Sequence record: OR413578.1
Length of the DNA stretch: 64,000 bases
Strand: one strand, 5' to 3'
Part shown: positions 811-57,993 of the stretch, piece after piece
Numbering within the stretch: position 1 is the stretch's first letter
How the letters are laid out: every line of letters begins with the position of its first letter
Program-made: the position numbers and the translations under genes
The notes under the pieces: model-generated
What the model was told of the DNA's origin: nothing
The model's input: only the letters and a program-made list of their open reading frames with translations
Database searches by the model: none

Positions 811-815
811 AATAT

Positions 816-840
816 CTCAGATATATATTACCTAGGTGAG
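816..840 (+). promoter_or_regulatory. phiKZ-type early (virion RNAP) promoter
   Basis: CTCAGATATATATTACCTAGGTGAG contains TATATTAC (reported phiKZ early consensus); near-identical copy at 57918-57943. Confidence 0.75.
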
Positions 841-860
841 AGTTAAGAGATTAACTCAAT

Positions 861-889
861 GGCTACCTTCGGGTAGCCTATTCTTTTTT
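861..889 (+). terminator. Intrinsic terminator-like hairpin in the leader of the 915 gene
   Basis: GGCTACC-TTCG-GGTAGCC followed by TATTCTTTTTT. Confidence 0.8.
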
Positions 890-914
890 AAACCAATCGA
901 CTATAGAGCAAAAC

Positions 915-1316
915 ATGACTATCAAGAAGTTCTTACAAACAGTAGTAGTTCTGGCCGCATGTGGTATCGCAGCAACTTATGCTTTCGATAAGCCAGACGT
1001 GACTGAATACGTATCTGCGGATTCCGATTACGGTATTGCACCGAATGAAAAACCGGAACTGATGCGTGAGGTCGAACAGTTACAAATCTACAAACTGACG
1101 GATGGTAAGAACTGCACAGGGCTGGTTATCGCTGATAAGAAACTGAAAATGTATCAGCGGTTATTCGACATATCGTGCGATCAACCAAAAGTCACTTCGG
1201 TCAGCGTATCGCCGTTGGAATTACCAGATCTGGTTGCTGTGAGTTTTTATCACAACGATGTGCTCGTTGGCCGCATCACCCTCATTCGTGGAGATATCAA
1301 AAATGAAATACAATAA
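915..1316 (+). CDS. Secreted/periplasmic protein, Cys-pair paralog 1
   Basis: Signal peptide MTIKKFLQTVVVLAACGIAATYA; NCTGLVIAD...ISCD motif shared with the next three ORFs. Confidence 0.8.
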   Translation: MTIKKFLQTVVVLAACGIAATYAFDKPDVTEYVSADSDYGIAPNEKPELMREVEQLQIYKLTDGKNCTGLVIADKKLKMYQRLFDISCDQPKVTSVSVSPLELPDLVAVSFYHNDVLVGRITLIRGDIKNEIQ

Positions 1317-1794
1317 CGTTAATCACCACTTGGCCAAAGTGGTGCTTTTTACTGTGCTGCTGATGGCACTTGTTGTTGGGCTACGGATTTCTAAGGCGCA
1401 CGCTGACGAATTCAGCGGGTTCCAGGGCAGTATTAACGGCAGCATTCCAGCATATACCCGCACCATCAATCTTAATGATAAGCCGTTCTGGTGCAACGCG
1501 CGTAAGCTGCTTAAGAAACAGTGTCGTGTAGTTGACATATCCTTCAACGGTCGTGTCGCTATCGTACACCGTCCGGGCGATAAAGATTGCCCAGGTGGTT
1601 GGTGGGGTGCAGTCGACCGTCACAACGGTGACGCGTTATGGCTTATCCCTAATCGTGATGAACTATCAGTGGAGAAAATTTGCAGCAAAGATTTCAGGGC
1701 CGGTTTTGTACAGCGACCTGATACCAAAACTCTGGCCTCCATCGCTATGTACTACGGTATGGAAACCATCAAAACAATCGACTATTCAGAATAA
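1303..1794 (+). CDS. Secreted/periplasmic protein, Cys-pair paralog 2
   Basis: ATG 1303 after GGAG; hydrophobic leader ending AHA; four Cys (FWC..C..DCPGGW..ICS). Confidence 0.8.
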   Translation: MKYNNVNHHLAKVVLFTVLLMALVVGLRISKAHADEFSGFQGSINGSIPAYTRTINLNDKPFWCNARKLLKKQCRVVDISFNGRVAIVHRPGDKDCPGGWWGAVDRHNGDALWLIPNRDELSVEKICSKDFRAGFVQRPDTKTLASIAMYYGMETIKTIDYSE

Positions 1795-1816
1795 CTCAAA
1801 AAATTGAGGTGCTATT

Positions 1817-2227
1817 ATGAAACATTTTTTATTACCAGTTTTACTTGCTACTCTGGCCATTAGCTTCTTCGCTCGTGCTGGAAGTATCGAGTTACCAAAA
1901 GTTGTTAACGATCACGAATACGGCGGACCCTTCTGGTGCCAGAACTCTGACGTACAAGGCGGTAGCTGCCAGATCGTTGCGATGTCCGATAACAACCGTT
2001 ACCTGTTAGTGAAAACTATGGGCGGCGTCGCATGTGGCGACCCTGAATACGGAGTTATTAACATGGCAACCGGGCAAGCCGAATCCATGAACTACAATGA
2101 TAACCAAGCCTGCAGTGGTGAAGCCGTTGCTGAGTTTACTCGCGACCCAGGTGATAATGCCCTGACGGTTATCATGTACGACCCTACGATTAAGAAAAAC
2201 GTAGGTATCAATAAACTCGACTTTTAA
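1817..2227 (+). CDS. Secreted/periplasmic protein, Cys-pair paralog 3
   Basis: GAGG RBS; signal peptide ending ARA; four Cys (FWC..SC..ACG..ACS). Confidence 0.85.
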   Translation: MKHFLLPVLLATLAISFFARAGSIELPKVVNDHEYGGPFWCQNSDVQGGSCQIVAMSDNNRYLLVKTMGGVACGDPEYGVINMATGQAESMNYNDNQACSGEAVAEFTRDPGDNALTVIMYDPTIKKNVGINKLDF

Positions 2228-2240
2228 GTAAGGAAACAAC

Positions 2241-2624
2241 ATGCGTGGATTTATGGGTATTATCGTGGCGGTGTTCTTTACCGCTTCTGCTTCAGCTACA
2301 ACCAGCGTAGAAGATTTACTACCAGGCACACCGTATCAGTACAATCCGCCTTCGTTCGAAGTCTGTACTGGCGACGATGGTAGATGTGAAGAAGTCAGCC
2401 GGCACGACGAGTATATCCTGGTCCACGCAAAGGGCGAGGAAACTTGTCCGGCAGGTTACTACTTTCTGTTGAACTCAAAGGCACAAGAGATTGTGCCTGT
2501 AGAGACAATAACGTGCGACCCGACGCTTCGCGCGTCGCTCGCATACAATACGAAAACCAAACAACGCCTCCTGGTTATTGAACAGCAAGGGGTGGTGCGT
2601 GGTTCAGTAGCGCTCGACCAGTAA
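2241..2624 (+). CDS. Secreted/periplasmic protein, Cys-pair paralog 4
   Basis: AAGGA RBS; signal peptide ending ASA; four Cys (VC..RC..TCPAGY..TCD). Confidence 0.85.
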   Translation: MRGFMGIIVAVFFTASASATTSVEDLLPGTPYQYNPPSFEVCTGDDGRCEEVSRHDEYILVHAKGEETCPAGYYFLLNSKAQEIVPVETITCDPTLRASLAYNTKTKQRLLVIEQQGVVRGSVALDQ

Positions 2625-2633
2625 CCGAAAAGT

Positions 2634-2658
2634 TTTCAGACAGATGTTATAACGTGAG
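2634..2658 (+). promoter_or_regulatory. Early promoter motif variant
   Basis: TTTCAGACAGATGTTATAACGTGAG aligns with the 816, 26228 and 57918 copies. Confidence 0.6.
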
Positions 2659-2678
2659 ATGACGACCCATCTCACTTT

Positions 2679-2723
2679 GGCCCTGCGGCGATATCCCCAA
2701 CACTTAGCCGCAGGGTCCTTTTT
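2679..2723 (+). terminator. Terminator-like hairpin in the leader of the 2754 gene
   Basis: GGCCCTGCGGC/GCCGCAGGGTC 11-bp stem, 17-nt loop, then CTTTTT. Confidence 0.6.
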
Positions 2724-2753
2724 AATCGACTATTACTCGTAAGGATTAAGCAA

Positions 2754-8879: not shown

Positions 8880-9128
8880 ATGCAAAAAACAATCATCGGA
8901 ATAACGGTTGGTTCTTTCTGTGGCTTCCCTACCCCACAAACAGAACCCCAATATTTGGGCGCAGGCAAACCTGACCCGGAAGTCCGTAAGTTGCGCGAAG
9001 AAGCAAAAGCCAGAGTTCTTACTGAGCTGGAATCGTTGCTTCAGTCTCCGGTTATTTCACAATGGGGTATGGCAATAGATGTCACTCGAACTGATCGACG
9101 AGGCCGTTATCTCCCACGACTTGTTTAA
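8880..9128 (+). CDS. Hypothetical protein
   Basis: 82-aa ORF abutting the previous stop. Confidence 0.7.
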   Translation: MQKTIIGITVGSFCGFPTPQTEPQYLGAGKPDPEVRKLREEAKARVLTELESLLQSPVISQWGMAIDVTRTDRRGRYLPRLV

Positions 9129-9579
9129 CGCGCCTGAGCGCTTCAAGGTCGTTACAGTTAACTGCGTTGGTGCAATGGGAAGGGGCATTGCCTTGGCGTG
9201 CCGAGAACGCTTCCCATCGCTTTATAATGACTATCGCCAGAAATGCCGTAAAGAGCAAATCGTTATCGGTGAGGTCTATTGTTATCCTGAGGAAGGGGTA
9301 ATACTCCTTCCTACTAAAACCCATTTTCGCTATAAATCGCAGATTTACTATGTCACGTCCGGCATTGATGCGCTGGCGCGACTAGGGGAAGACTTAGAAG
9401 GAGGGATTGCGATACCGCCCCTAGGGATGGCTAACGGTTGGTTACGTTACCATGAGCGATTGGAAATCTTTATACACTTACAGAAACGACTACAGCACAC
9501 GGAGCAGACTTATCGATTCTATTTACCGGACACCCTGCTGAGGGAAGCAGAGAAAATCATCCCAAATAGTTTCAAATAG
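9079..9579 (+). CDS. Macrodomain protein (ADP-ribose processing, DarG-like subgroup)
   Basis: VTVNCVGAMGRGIALACRERFPSLYNDY, LLPTKTHF, IAIPPLGMANGWL. Confidence 0.85.
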   Translation: MSLELIDEAVISHDLFNAPERFKVVTVNCVGAMGRGIALACRERFPSLYNDYRQKCRKEQIVIGEVYCYPEEGVILLPTKTHFRYKSQIYYVTSGIDALARLGEDLEGGIAIPPLGMANGWLRYHERLEIFIHLQKRLQHTEQTYRFYLPDTLLREAEKIIPNSFK

Positions 9580-9678: not shown

Positions 9679-10401
9679 ATGTTTCGCACCATTTTATTTC
9701 TTCTGGTAGCAATGACTACGTTCAACAGCAACGCTTCTTACCAGACCACCAGTAACAAACACCAAAAAGAATTCGTCCTTATCCAGGACCAGTTCAATGA
9801 GATTAAACCTCTCATCGTCACCGCATCTCGAAAACAAGGCGTACATGCCGGGATGCTCGCGACCACCATTTATCGTGAATCCCGTTTTAATAAAAACGTG
9901 GGTAAGAATAAATCGAGCAGTGCTAGTAGTGTTGTCCAAATGACGACAGGCACTAAACGCTCCATGATACGTCTGTATGGGAAACAACTTAACATCCCAA
10001 AGAATGCGGACCTTAATAAACCGAAGTATGCTGTACAGCTTGCTGCCGTTTACATGAAACACATCGAGGATCATCTGACAAAACAACTCAAACGCAAGCC
10101 GAGCACAGCCGAAATCGCTTTAGGCTACCGCTTCGGTGAGGGTGCTGCTGTTGCGATGATTAAAAAGAAATCACCGGTCGGGAAACGCTGGATGGCCAGC
10201 TACCGAAAAGACGCAGCATTCTACGGTGCGAAAATGACACCACCGAAAGCTGAAACACGTCAGCTTGCTTTTGCGAAGGAAGACCGCGACCAACGCGTCG
10301 CCGAACTTCAGAAAATCTGGGATACGCTGTACACCAAAATATCACCTGCGGCCGGTACATTACTGGCAAATAACACTATCATGAAAGGAGCATTGCTTTG
10401 A
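9679..10401 (+). CDS. Secreted SLT-family lytic transglycosylase-like protein
   Basis: Signal peptide; IYRESRFN catalytic Glu motif, SASSVVQMT (GLMQ-like), AVQLAAVY and LGYRFGEG motifs. Confidence 0.8.
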   Translation: MFRTILFLLVAMTTFNSNASYQTTSNKHQKEFVLIQDQFNEIKPLIVTASRKQGVHAGMLATTIYRESRFNKNVGKNKSSSASSVVQMTTGTKRSMIRLYGKQLNIPKNADLNKPKYAVQLAAVYMKHIEDHLTKQLKRKPSTAEIALGYRFGEGAAVAMIKKKSPVGKRWMASYRKDAAFYGAKMTPPKAETRQLAFAKEDRDQRVAELQKIWDTLYTKISPAAGTLLANNTIMKGALL

Positions 10402-57910: not shown

Positions 57911-57943
57911 AAAAAGAACTGAGATATATATTACTTAGGTGAG
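57911..57943 (+). promoter_or_regulatory. Early promoter
   Basis: AAAAAGAACTGAGATATATATTACTTAGGTGAG; TATATTAC core. Confidence 0.75.
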
Positions 57944-57993
57944 CGTTACACGTTAACGCTTTAATCGACTATTACCCAGAAGGAGTATTTACA

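Follow-up and report, generated by a model that had tools for sequence, protein, structure and literature searches.

We examined a 64,000-nucleotide (nt) stretch of sequence record OR413578.1 (hereafter, the window), which comes from the 240-kb genome of the Salmonella jumbo phage SPLA1a, and concentrated on four consecutive small open reading frames (ORFs A-D) on its + strand. Positions 800-2800 of the window are 100% identical to SPLA1a and 98% identical to SPN3US, both of which are members of Seoulvirus, a jumbo-phage genus assigned to the Chimalliviridae (PMC11428620). ORFs A-D are the orthologues of SPN3US gp180-183 (SPN3US_0180-0183); they are labelled hypothetical in all records inspected, and gp180-183 go unmentioned in the main text of the paper on the essential genes and virion of SPN3US. 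The genes are tightly packed—A and B have 14 nt in common, B and C are 22 nt apart, and C and D 13 nt (for B, we used the ATG start of the SPN3US and SPLA1a records)—and it is strongly supported that positions 915-2624 form one operon encoding four small paralogous proteins (Table 1). An earlier note on this DNA had described the four as secreted, cysteine-containing paralogues behind an early promoter, and had suggested that they are a diversified set of periplasmic inhibitors. For the genome-wide scans reported below, the SPLA1a record was pieced together from twelve regions and comprised 273 ORFs.

Table 1. Features of the four-gene array and its flanks, with positions in the window (aa, amino acids; pI, isoelectric point; signal peptides as predicted)
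Feature	Position	Strand	Description
phiKZ-type early (virion RNA polymerase) promoter element	814-839	+	core TATATTAC at 824-831
Small leader hairpin	840-857	+	GAGTTAA ... TTAACTC; also at five other promoter copies
Intrinsic terminator	861-889	+	7-bp GC-rich stem, TTCG loop, T-run; between promoter and A
AATCGACTAT box	895-904	+	10 nt before ATG of A
Paralogue A (gp180 orthologue)	915-1316	+	133 aa; signal peptide 1-23; mature 110 aa, pI 4.8; one Cys pair C67, C88
Paralogue B (gp181)	1303-1794	+	163 aa; signal peptide 1-34; mature 129 aa, pI 8.4; four Cys
AATCGACTAT repeat	1776-1785	+	exact copy, before C
Paralogue C (gp182)	1817-2227	+	136 aa; signal peptide 1-21; mature 115 aa, pI 4.3; four Cys
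Paralogue D (gp183)	2241-2624	+	127 aa; signal peptide 1-19; mature 108 aa, pI 4.7; four Cys
Double hairpin and T-run	2654-2724	+	end of four-gene unit; read from sequence
AATCGACTAT repeat	2724-2733	+	exact copy, before gp184

Four conserved cysteines are common to paralogues B, C, and D, and A retains the second pair only. Similarity was detectable by BLASTP between B and C (4e-9) and between C and D (0.007), and the PHROG models of these three proteins cross-match one another, with the PHROG matches of A-D as a whole falling exclusively into four families of unknown function. A had no BLAST match to B, C, or D; when a 12-sequence A-type profile was compared with the B/C/D profile using hhalign, the two were aligned with 85.9% probability (E 5e-6), and the two cysteines of A were placed on Cys3 and Cys4. 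Across an alignment of the 34-sequence family (see below), no columns are better conserved than the four cysteines—one does not vary at all, and the remainder reach 90% or more—and the aromatic residues directly after Cys3 are also conserved. Both the paralogy of the four proteins and the retention of only the second cysteine pair by A, as read in the earlier note, are thus upheld, the former by BLASTP, the PHROG cross-matches, hhalign, and the fold models described below and, for A, also by a fifth family member.

The family has a fifth copy in the SPLA1a genome, located outside the window about 77 kb upstream (99833-100222 of the genome; L032:834-1223; WNT47520.1). This gene, which lies downstream of an acetyltransferase gene and is the last before a terminator, encodes a protein of 129 aa with a predicted signal peptide, the second cysteine pair only, a CPGGGFY motif, and a pI of 8.4. 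Both profiles, A-type and B/C/D-type, detect it, the two matches scoring 3e-8 and 3e-5.

We judged signal peptides by hydrophobicity and an AXA heuristic. On this basis, each of A-D has the makings of a Sec type I signal peptide, with a K/R-containing n-region, an uncharged h-region of 10-15 residues, and a small-x-small site, and cleavage is predicted between TYA and F in A, AHA and D in B, ARA and G in C, and ASA and T in D. In a crude genome-wide scan, 17 of the 273 ORFs were signal-like, and A-D were the sole adjacent run among them. The four proteins are therefore predicted to be exported through Sec and to be stabilised by one disulfide in the case of A, or two in the case of B, C, and D. 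Signal peptides had been proposed for all four proteins, with failure of export named as a finding that would speak against the proposal; the heuristic agrees with the former, and cytoplasmic retention is predicted for none of A-D.

It is conceivable, if very unlikely in our estimation, that these hydrophobic N-termini act instead as signal anchors that are not cleaved—or, in the case of A, as a lipoprotein signal—such that the proteins would be tethered to the membrane and not free in the periplasm. A lipobox-like LAAC at residues 13-16 of A, as well as the long n-region and 15-residue h-region of B, would fit such an arrangement, but a small-x-small site follows the h-region in all four proteins, and each contains a single hydrophobic segment, with no second one in any of A-D. 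Furthermore, while A orthologues can carry IAVC or AVVC in the middle of the h-region, the cysteine lies outside a lipobox context in Asesino, Huxley, and ChrisDB and is missing altogether in Wellington. Because the LAAC motif is not conserved among orthologues, we took the N-terminus of A to be an ordinary signal peptide and dropped the possibility that A is an exclusion lipoprotein of the Llp/Cor type. The signal peptides of B, C, and D contain no cysteine.

We next consider the predicted fold, for which AlphaFold (AF2) models were built for two of the proteins, mature C (from 34 sequences) and mature A (from 12 sequences). The model of C attained a predicted local distance difference test score (pLDDT) of 95.4 and a predicted template modelling score (pTM) of 0.88, and that of A, with two four-stranded sheets, a pLDDT of 85 and a pTM of 0.77. 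Both models are all-beta, with 7-8 strands arranged in two sheets (4 + 3-4 strands by DSSP), and both display the four-stranded antiparallel blade that characterises beta-propellers. An exhaustive VIA search returned matches at Z 5-6.7 over 73-96 residues, and these were always to two consecutive propeller blades, including those of TolB, acylaminoacyl and prolyl peptidases (S9), DPP-IV, WD40 proteins, and the two-blade designs Pizza2 and Pizza3 (PDB 3ww7, 3ww8). Models A and C aligned with identical segments of identical chains, among them shared pairs of blades in TolB, PfCyRPA, and IFT-A; model A covered 78 of the 82 residues of Pizza2 (Z 5.7, root-mean-square deviation 3.3), and model C aligned with Pizza3 at Z 5.2. 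The two models also retrieved each other's families from BFVD (TM 0.5-0.62) above nearly all else. We consider it strongly supported by these models that A and C each adopt two four-stranded sheets resembling two adjacent blades of a TolB/PD40-type propeller, and the agreement between them runs counter to the possibility, raised in the earlier note as grounds for rejecting its proposal, that the folds of the paralogues differ.

The resemblance to propellers has limits of its own. All Z values were below 7, a range common for unrelated folds, and we therefore describe the fold as "two-blade, propeller-like" and make no claim of homology. Unlike propeller blades, the two sheets are not related by a sequence repeat, and there is an additional disulfide-bonded N-terminal segment. 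In both models, the N-terminal strand seems to close the second sheet, which hints at a domain that is structurally independent. Foldseek yielded no match in the PDB at E<=1e-3 and one weak row, the immunity protein Tni2 (E 0.11, TM 0.25-0.32); PDB sequence and profile searches with the A-type and B/C/D alignments produced chance-level rows only, and an ESM Atlas search with a homologue returned only unnamed clusters.

The family is very small, with 34 proteins recovered at E<=1e-3 by an exhaustive profile search of 1.84 billion representatives. Single-sequence searches for homologues retrieved close relatives only, and the single-sequence search for related loci retrieved only SPN3US. In the phage collection, A occurs in 64 records and so does C, and sorting by organism name gives identical counts for both (33 Salmonella, 27 Erwinia, two Escherichia, one Proteus, and one Enterobacteria phage). 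The order A-(B)-C-D is retained in every related jumbo-phage lineage examined—arrays in Seoulvirus, in the three Erwinia jumbo-phage genera Erskinevirus, Machinavirus, and Wellingtonvirus, and in metagenomic relatives all open with an A-type gene, behind which come two or three genes of the four-Cys kind, the C-type is in all cases ahead of the D-type, and the array lies upstream of an SMC/SbcC-like gene wherever the stretch extends to that gene. Array size varies by lineage between three, four, and five members, with B missing from Machinavirus-type arrays. Wel_203 and the genes of ~80 aa upstream in the Erwinia arrays were considered and rejected as members of the family.

Where measurable, the ratio of nonsynonymous to synonymous substitution rates (dN/dS) was 0.07-0.19 versus SPN3US and 0.09-0.13 versus STsAS. 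A, C, and D are at least as conserved as gp177-179; versus STsAS, gp184 is somewhat more conserved than they are and gp185 about equally so. B is the fastest-evolving member of the array. The presence of one-to-one, ordered orthologues across genera, combined with purifying selection, suggests that the array is an old, fixed set of non-redundant members, and not the "diversified set" that had been envisaged; the idea of a rapidly diversifying arms-race array was rejected on the same grounds. Two further observations concern individual relatives. In STsAS (MH221128), an orthologue of D with 69% identity is present at L033:6309-6844 and unannotated in the record. In one metagenomic relative (L035:4250-5774), the array consists of an A-type gene, an extra gene of 112 aa, a C-type gene, and a D-type gene, directly before the SMC-like gene and with no gp184/185 homologues intervening; the product of the extra gene is of the secreted type, has one disulfide, and is detected by neither profile.

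A two-blade fold encoded in a gene set of fixed order might indicate that the proteins are parts of something larger, namely a split propeller or lectin-like oligomer in which two-blade subunits would close into a ring of six to eight blades, built from A-B-C-D together or from copies of a single protein. Such a ring, akin to those that Pizza2 and two-blade bacterial lectins form by trimerising, would bind an envelope glycan (lipopolysaccharide, peptidoglycan, or enterobacterial common antigen) or a protein. The good matches to Pizza2 and Pizza3, the tight spacing and overlap of the genes, the equal tallies of A and C across the 64 records, the opposite charges of the subunits (pI 4.3-4.8 for A, C, and D versus 8.4 for B and the fifth paralogue), and the aromatic residues conserved just past Cys3 are all consistent with this idea. 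On the other hand, arrays of three, four, or five members are hard to fit with a fixed ring, bacterial islands (described below) retain just C plus a D-type fusion, and closure of the second sheet by the N-terminal strand would make each protein a domain in its own right. On balance, we consider a split ring to be rather unlikely.

The region upstream of A supports the prediction of an early promoter made from the sequence beforehand. The ~25-nt element TTTCAGATATATATTACYTAGGTGA is present six times in the genome in near-identical form, always on the + strand, and fits the early-promoter consensus of phiKZ and 201phi2-1 (tabulated in PMC7058600, Table 2); AT-rich motifs of this type are found at about -10 of early genes (reviewed in PMC7598289). 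The five other copies precede operons of typical early-type genes. A second box, AATCGACTAT, recurs in nine exact copies genome-wide, again all on the + strand, with zero copies of a control pattern. It follows the early promoter by 36-71 nt at four of the six promoter copies, while those at 68884 and 125552 have one-mismatch variants, AACCGACTAT and AATCGACCAT, in its place. The promoter box, hairpin, and AATCGACTAT box together constitute a composite element of ~70 nt, found at 814-904 and 57917-57972 of the window and at four more places elsewhere. Exact AATCGACTAT boxes also occur apart from any early promoter (window positions 1776, 2724, and 57173), and the box may mark a second class of promoter or a site of processing, or act as a signal for translation.

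What sets the array apart from the other five promoter copies is the intrinsic terminator that intervenes between the promoter and A, which a comparison of contexts showed to be present only here, and the ribosome-binding site, which is weak before A and strong at the other five. A promoter followed immediately by a terminator is known in 201phi2-1, where a role in timing has been proposed (PMC11512511). In four Erwinia-phage loci (L012, L015, L016, and L018), all from distant lineages, a GC-rich hairpin and T-run likewise end close ahead of the A-type gene (15-25 nt from its ATG), indicating that the start of the array behind a terminator is conserved even where TATATTAC is not found nearby. 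Downstream, a terminator scan assigned a separate terminator to each of the neighbouring genes gp179, gp184, and gp185. Contigs from two RNA-seq libraries span the whole operon with a depth above that of the flanks; as contig depth is unable to rank genes, we take the RNA-seq as evidence of presence only. Elsewhere around the array, a DUF1471-domain protein is annotated ~5.5 kb upstream on the opposite strand (SPN3US gp094, L001:396-605). DUF1471 is an enterobacterial periplasmic family, and gp094 may be another host-like exported protein near the array.

Relatives of the family also occur in bacterial chromosomes. One distant match of the family, P0041, resides in a CP4-like integrative island together with antirestriction, RadC, DUF987, and CbeA/CbtA genes, and its neighbour is a secreted-type protein of 295 aa comprising an Ivy-like domain, a proline-rich linker, and a D-type four-Cys domain. 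Proteins homologous to this neighbour, ~310 aa in length, occur widely across E. coli, Salmonella, Serratia, Klebsiella, Citrobacter, and Yersinia, and several of them are named "Ivy family c-type lysozyme inhibitor" by NCBI. The N-terminal domain matched Pfam Ivy (PF08816) at E 1.4e-3 and 19.2 bits (cut-off 21), and with a profile of the island-protein family the top four PDB hits were all Ivy (E 0.01-0.03); where Ivy has the inhibitory CKPHDC loop, the island domain has CE-x-GNCG. The C-terminal domain was assigned to the D-type by hhalign at 92.5% probability and E 4.8e-7 (single sequence, L041:4594-4944), by profile-profile comparison at 74-81%, and by hmmsearch at 2.6e-5. Directly preceding the fusion gene in four of the four E. 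coli chromosome places shown is a gene for a secreted-type protein of 136 aa, which shows 42% identity to phage C from end to end (BLASTP 1e-41; L042:3525-3935). This pair is located at L042:3525-4939 (E. coli chromosome), in L043-L045, and at L041:4060-5459, and is very common, with P0073 occurring in 1457 index blocks.

Comparison of the phage arrays with the island pairs shows that the adjacency of C and D is common to both. Moreover, going by the profile matches of the fusion protein, the D-type domain is in islands physically joined to a domain from a family of peptidoglycan-hydrolase inhibitors. Ivy inhibits C-type lysozyme, and its activity extends to lytic transglycosylases—the P. aeruginosa protein inhibits MltB in vitro, and the E. 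coli protein is a weak inhibitor of MltA and MltB (PMC10139938). A link between A-D and inhibition of muramidases or transglycosylases is thus indirectly supported, by way of a D-type/Ivy-like fusion encoded beside a C-type gene.

We compared A-D with several systems of known function. Searches of Pfam (to E<=1), NCBIfam, and PADLOC gave no match for A-D; in particular, the Ivy domain (PF08816) had no Pfam match in A-D at E<=1, and the CKPHDC inhibitory loop is absent from them. Like Ivy and the island Ivy-family proteins, A-D are small, disulfide-containing, and of periplasmic type (by prediction), but they are phage proteins that lack the Ivy domain and whose fold consists of two propeller-like blades. 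Among phage proteins, Spackle and Imm of T4 are early, exported superinfection-exclusion proteins, and Spackle, the fold of which is helical, blocks the tail lysozyme of incoming phages. A-D resemble both in being phage-encoded, of early type by their promoter, and, as predicted, exported to the envelope; they differ from Spackle in that there is no sequence similarity, the models of A and C are all-beta, and they form a set of several paralogues versus a single gene. The PliC/MliC, PliI, PliG, and Tsi proteins, a class put forward in the earlier note, are small, periplasmic, often disulfide-bonded binders of peptidoglycan hydrolases; none of them was matched by A-D in Pfam, NCBIfam, or PADLOC, and they were absent from the fold lists save for the weak Tni2 row. 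Neither homology nor fold resemblance to Spackle, Pli/Mli, or Tsi is therefore supported.

Based on the predicted export, the early-type expression, and the island pair of a C-type protein and an Ivy-like::D-type fusion, we tentatively propose, at a likelihood somewhat short of even, that A-D are periplasmic binding modules, probably cooperating with one another (at least C with D), that would neutralise a peptidoglycan-cleaving enzyme or an envelope-penetrating device early in infection. This would either protect the wall of the infected cell or exclude later-arriving phages. Both the target class and the biological role are inferred from these associations, and several points weigh against them. 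The terminator in the leader may keep early expression low. The signal-peptide calls are heuristic, and the predicted fold is a generic one for which the fold searches matched no known lysozyme or amidase inhibitor. In the islands, the Ivy assignment is borderline, being sub-threshold for Pfam, and the inhibitory histidine is absent from the loop; the assignment of the fused domain to the D-type depends on profile comparisons with probabilities of 74-92%. Finally, the fusion belongs to bacterial relatives, and the fused D-type domain could serve there as an anchor or adaptor and not as an inhibitor.

A related possibility is that A-D regulate the phage's own lysis, restraining an SLT-domain enzyme or a tail-associated lysin until lysis or assembly, which had been offered as a second option in the earlier note. 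An SLT transglycosylase domain is indeed encoded in the same window, as that note had indicated (ORF 9679-10401; Pfam SLT, 27.7 bits versus a cut-off of 21.3), and the Ivy family is tied to the control of lytic transglycosylases (PMC10139938). However, the operon is not next to the SLT gene and has an early-type promoter, as opposed to late co-expression with lysis genes, and the C/D pair is kept in islands that, in the stretches examined, lack phage lysis genes. Early-type expression and the occurrence of the pair in non-lytic islands make self-regulation of the SLT enzyme less likely, and we rate this option as highly improbable. Just upstream of the SLT ORF, ORF 9079-9579 has a borderline match to the Macro domain (21.7 bits; cut-off 22).

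Alternatively, A-D might modulate host envelope machines, binding the flagellar basal body, Tol-Pal, or outer-membrane receptors so as to remodel or mask them in the course of the prolonged jumbo-phage cycle; peptidoglycan hydrolases would play no part. Predicted export and the early-type promoter are equally expected under this alternative, the blades of A and C are similar to those of TolB/PD40, and flagella are reported to be the receptor used by SPN3US (PMC11428620). Yet the likeness to TolB is at the level of a generic blade (Z about 5), nothing ties the family to flagella, and the Ivy-like fusion would be left unexplained. Given that the family is common to Erwinia phages and E. coli islands, the target would also have to be broadly conserved. 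We regard modulation of host machines as distinctly unlikely.

The proposal of neutralising modules can be carried further, into a scheme that we present as speculative and improbable in its entirety. A-D and their island relatives may represent a new two- or multi-component periplasmic "anti-lysin" immunity module common to jumbo phages and enterobacterial integrative islands, in which two-blade units of the C-type and D-type would pair. In phages, A and B would join the pair in a split 6-8-bladed propeller that captures the peptidoglycan-cleaving tip enzymes of incoming phages, and in islands, an Ivy-like warhead would be added to D.

Our literature searches found no report of jumbo (nucleus-forming) phage proteins acting in the periplasm, and superinfection exclusion and secreted proteins of jumbo phages went unmentioned in the reviews searched. 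A-D offer an experimental handle on this subject, as a conserved, early-type operon with predicted export, a confidently predicted fold, and a fifth copy in the genome. They also provide a direct evolutionary link to the widespread, uncharacterised pair of "Ivy family" and gpC-like proteins in E. coli and Salmonella islands. Even if this link is not functional, the family would still exemplify, in nature, a two-blade propeller-like domain that stands alone. If it is functional, phage exclusion, the control of peptidoglycan-cleaving enzymes, and the cargo of mobile islands would be connected, and hundreds of annotations as "hypothetical" or "prophage protein" would be explained. Were the anti-lysin scheme to hold, it would reveal a new structural class of superinfection exclusion and give a function to a very common but unannotated gene pair in the islands of E. 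coli and Salmonella.

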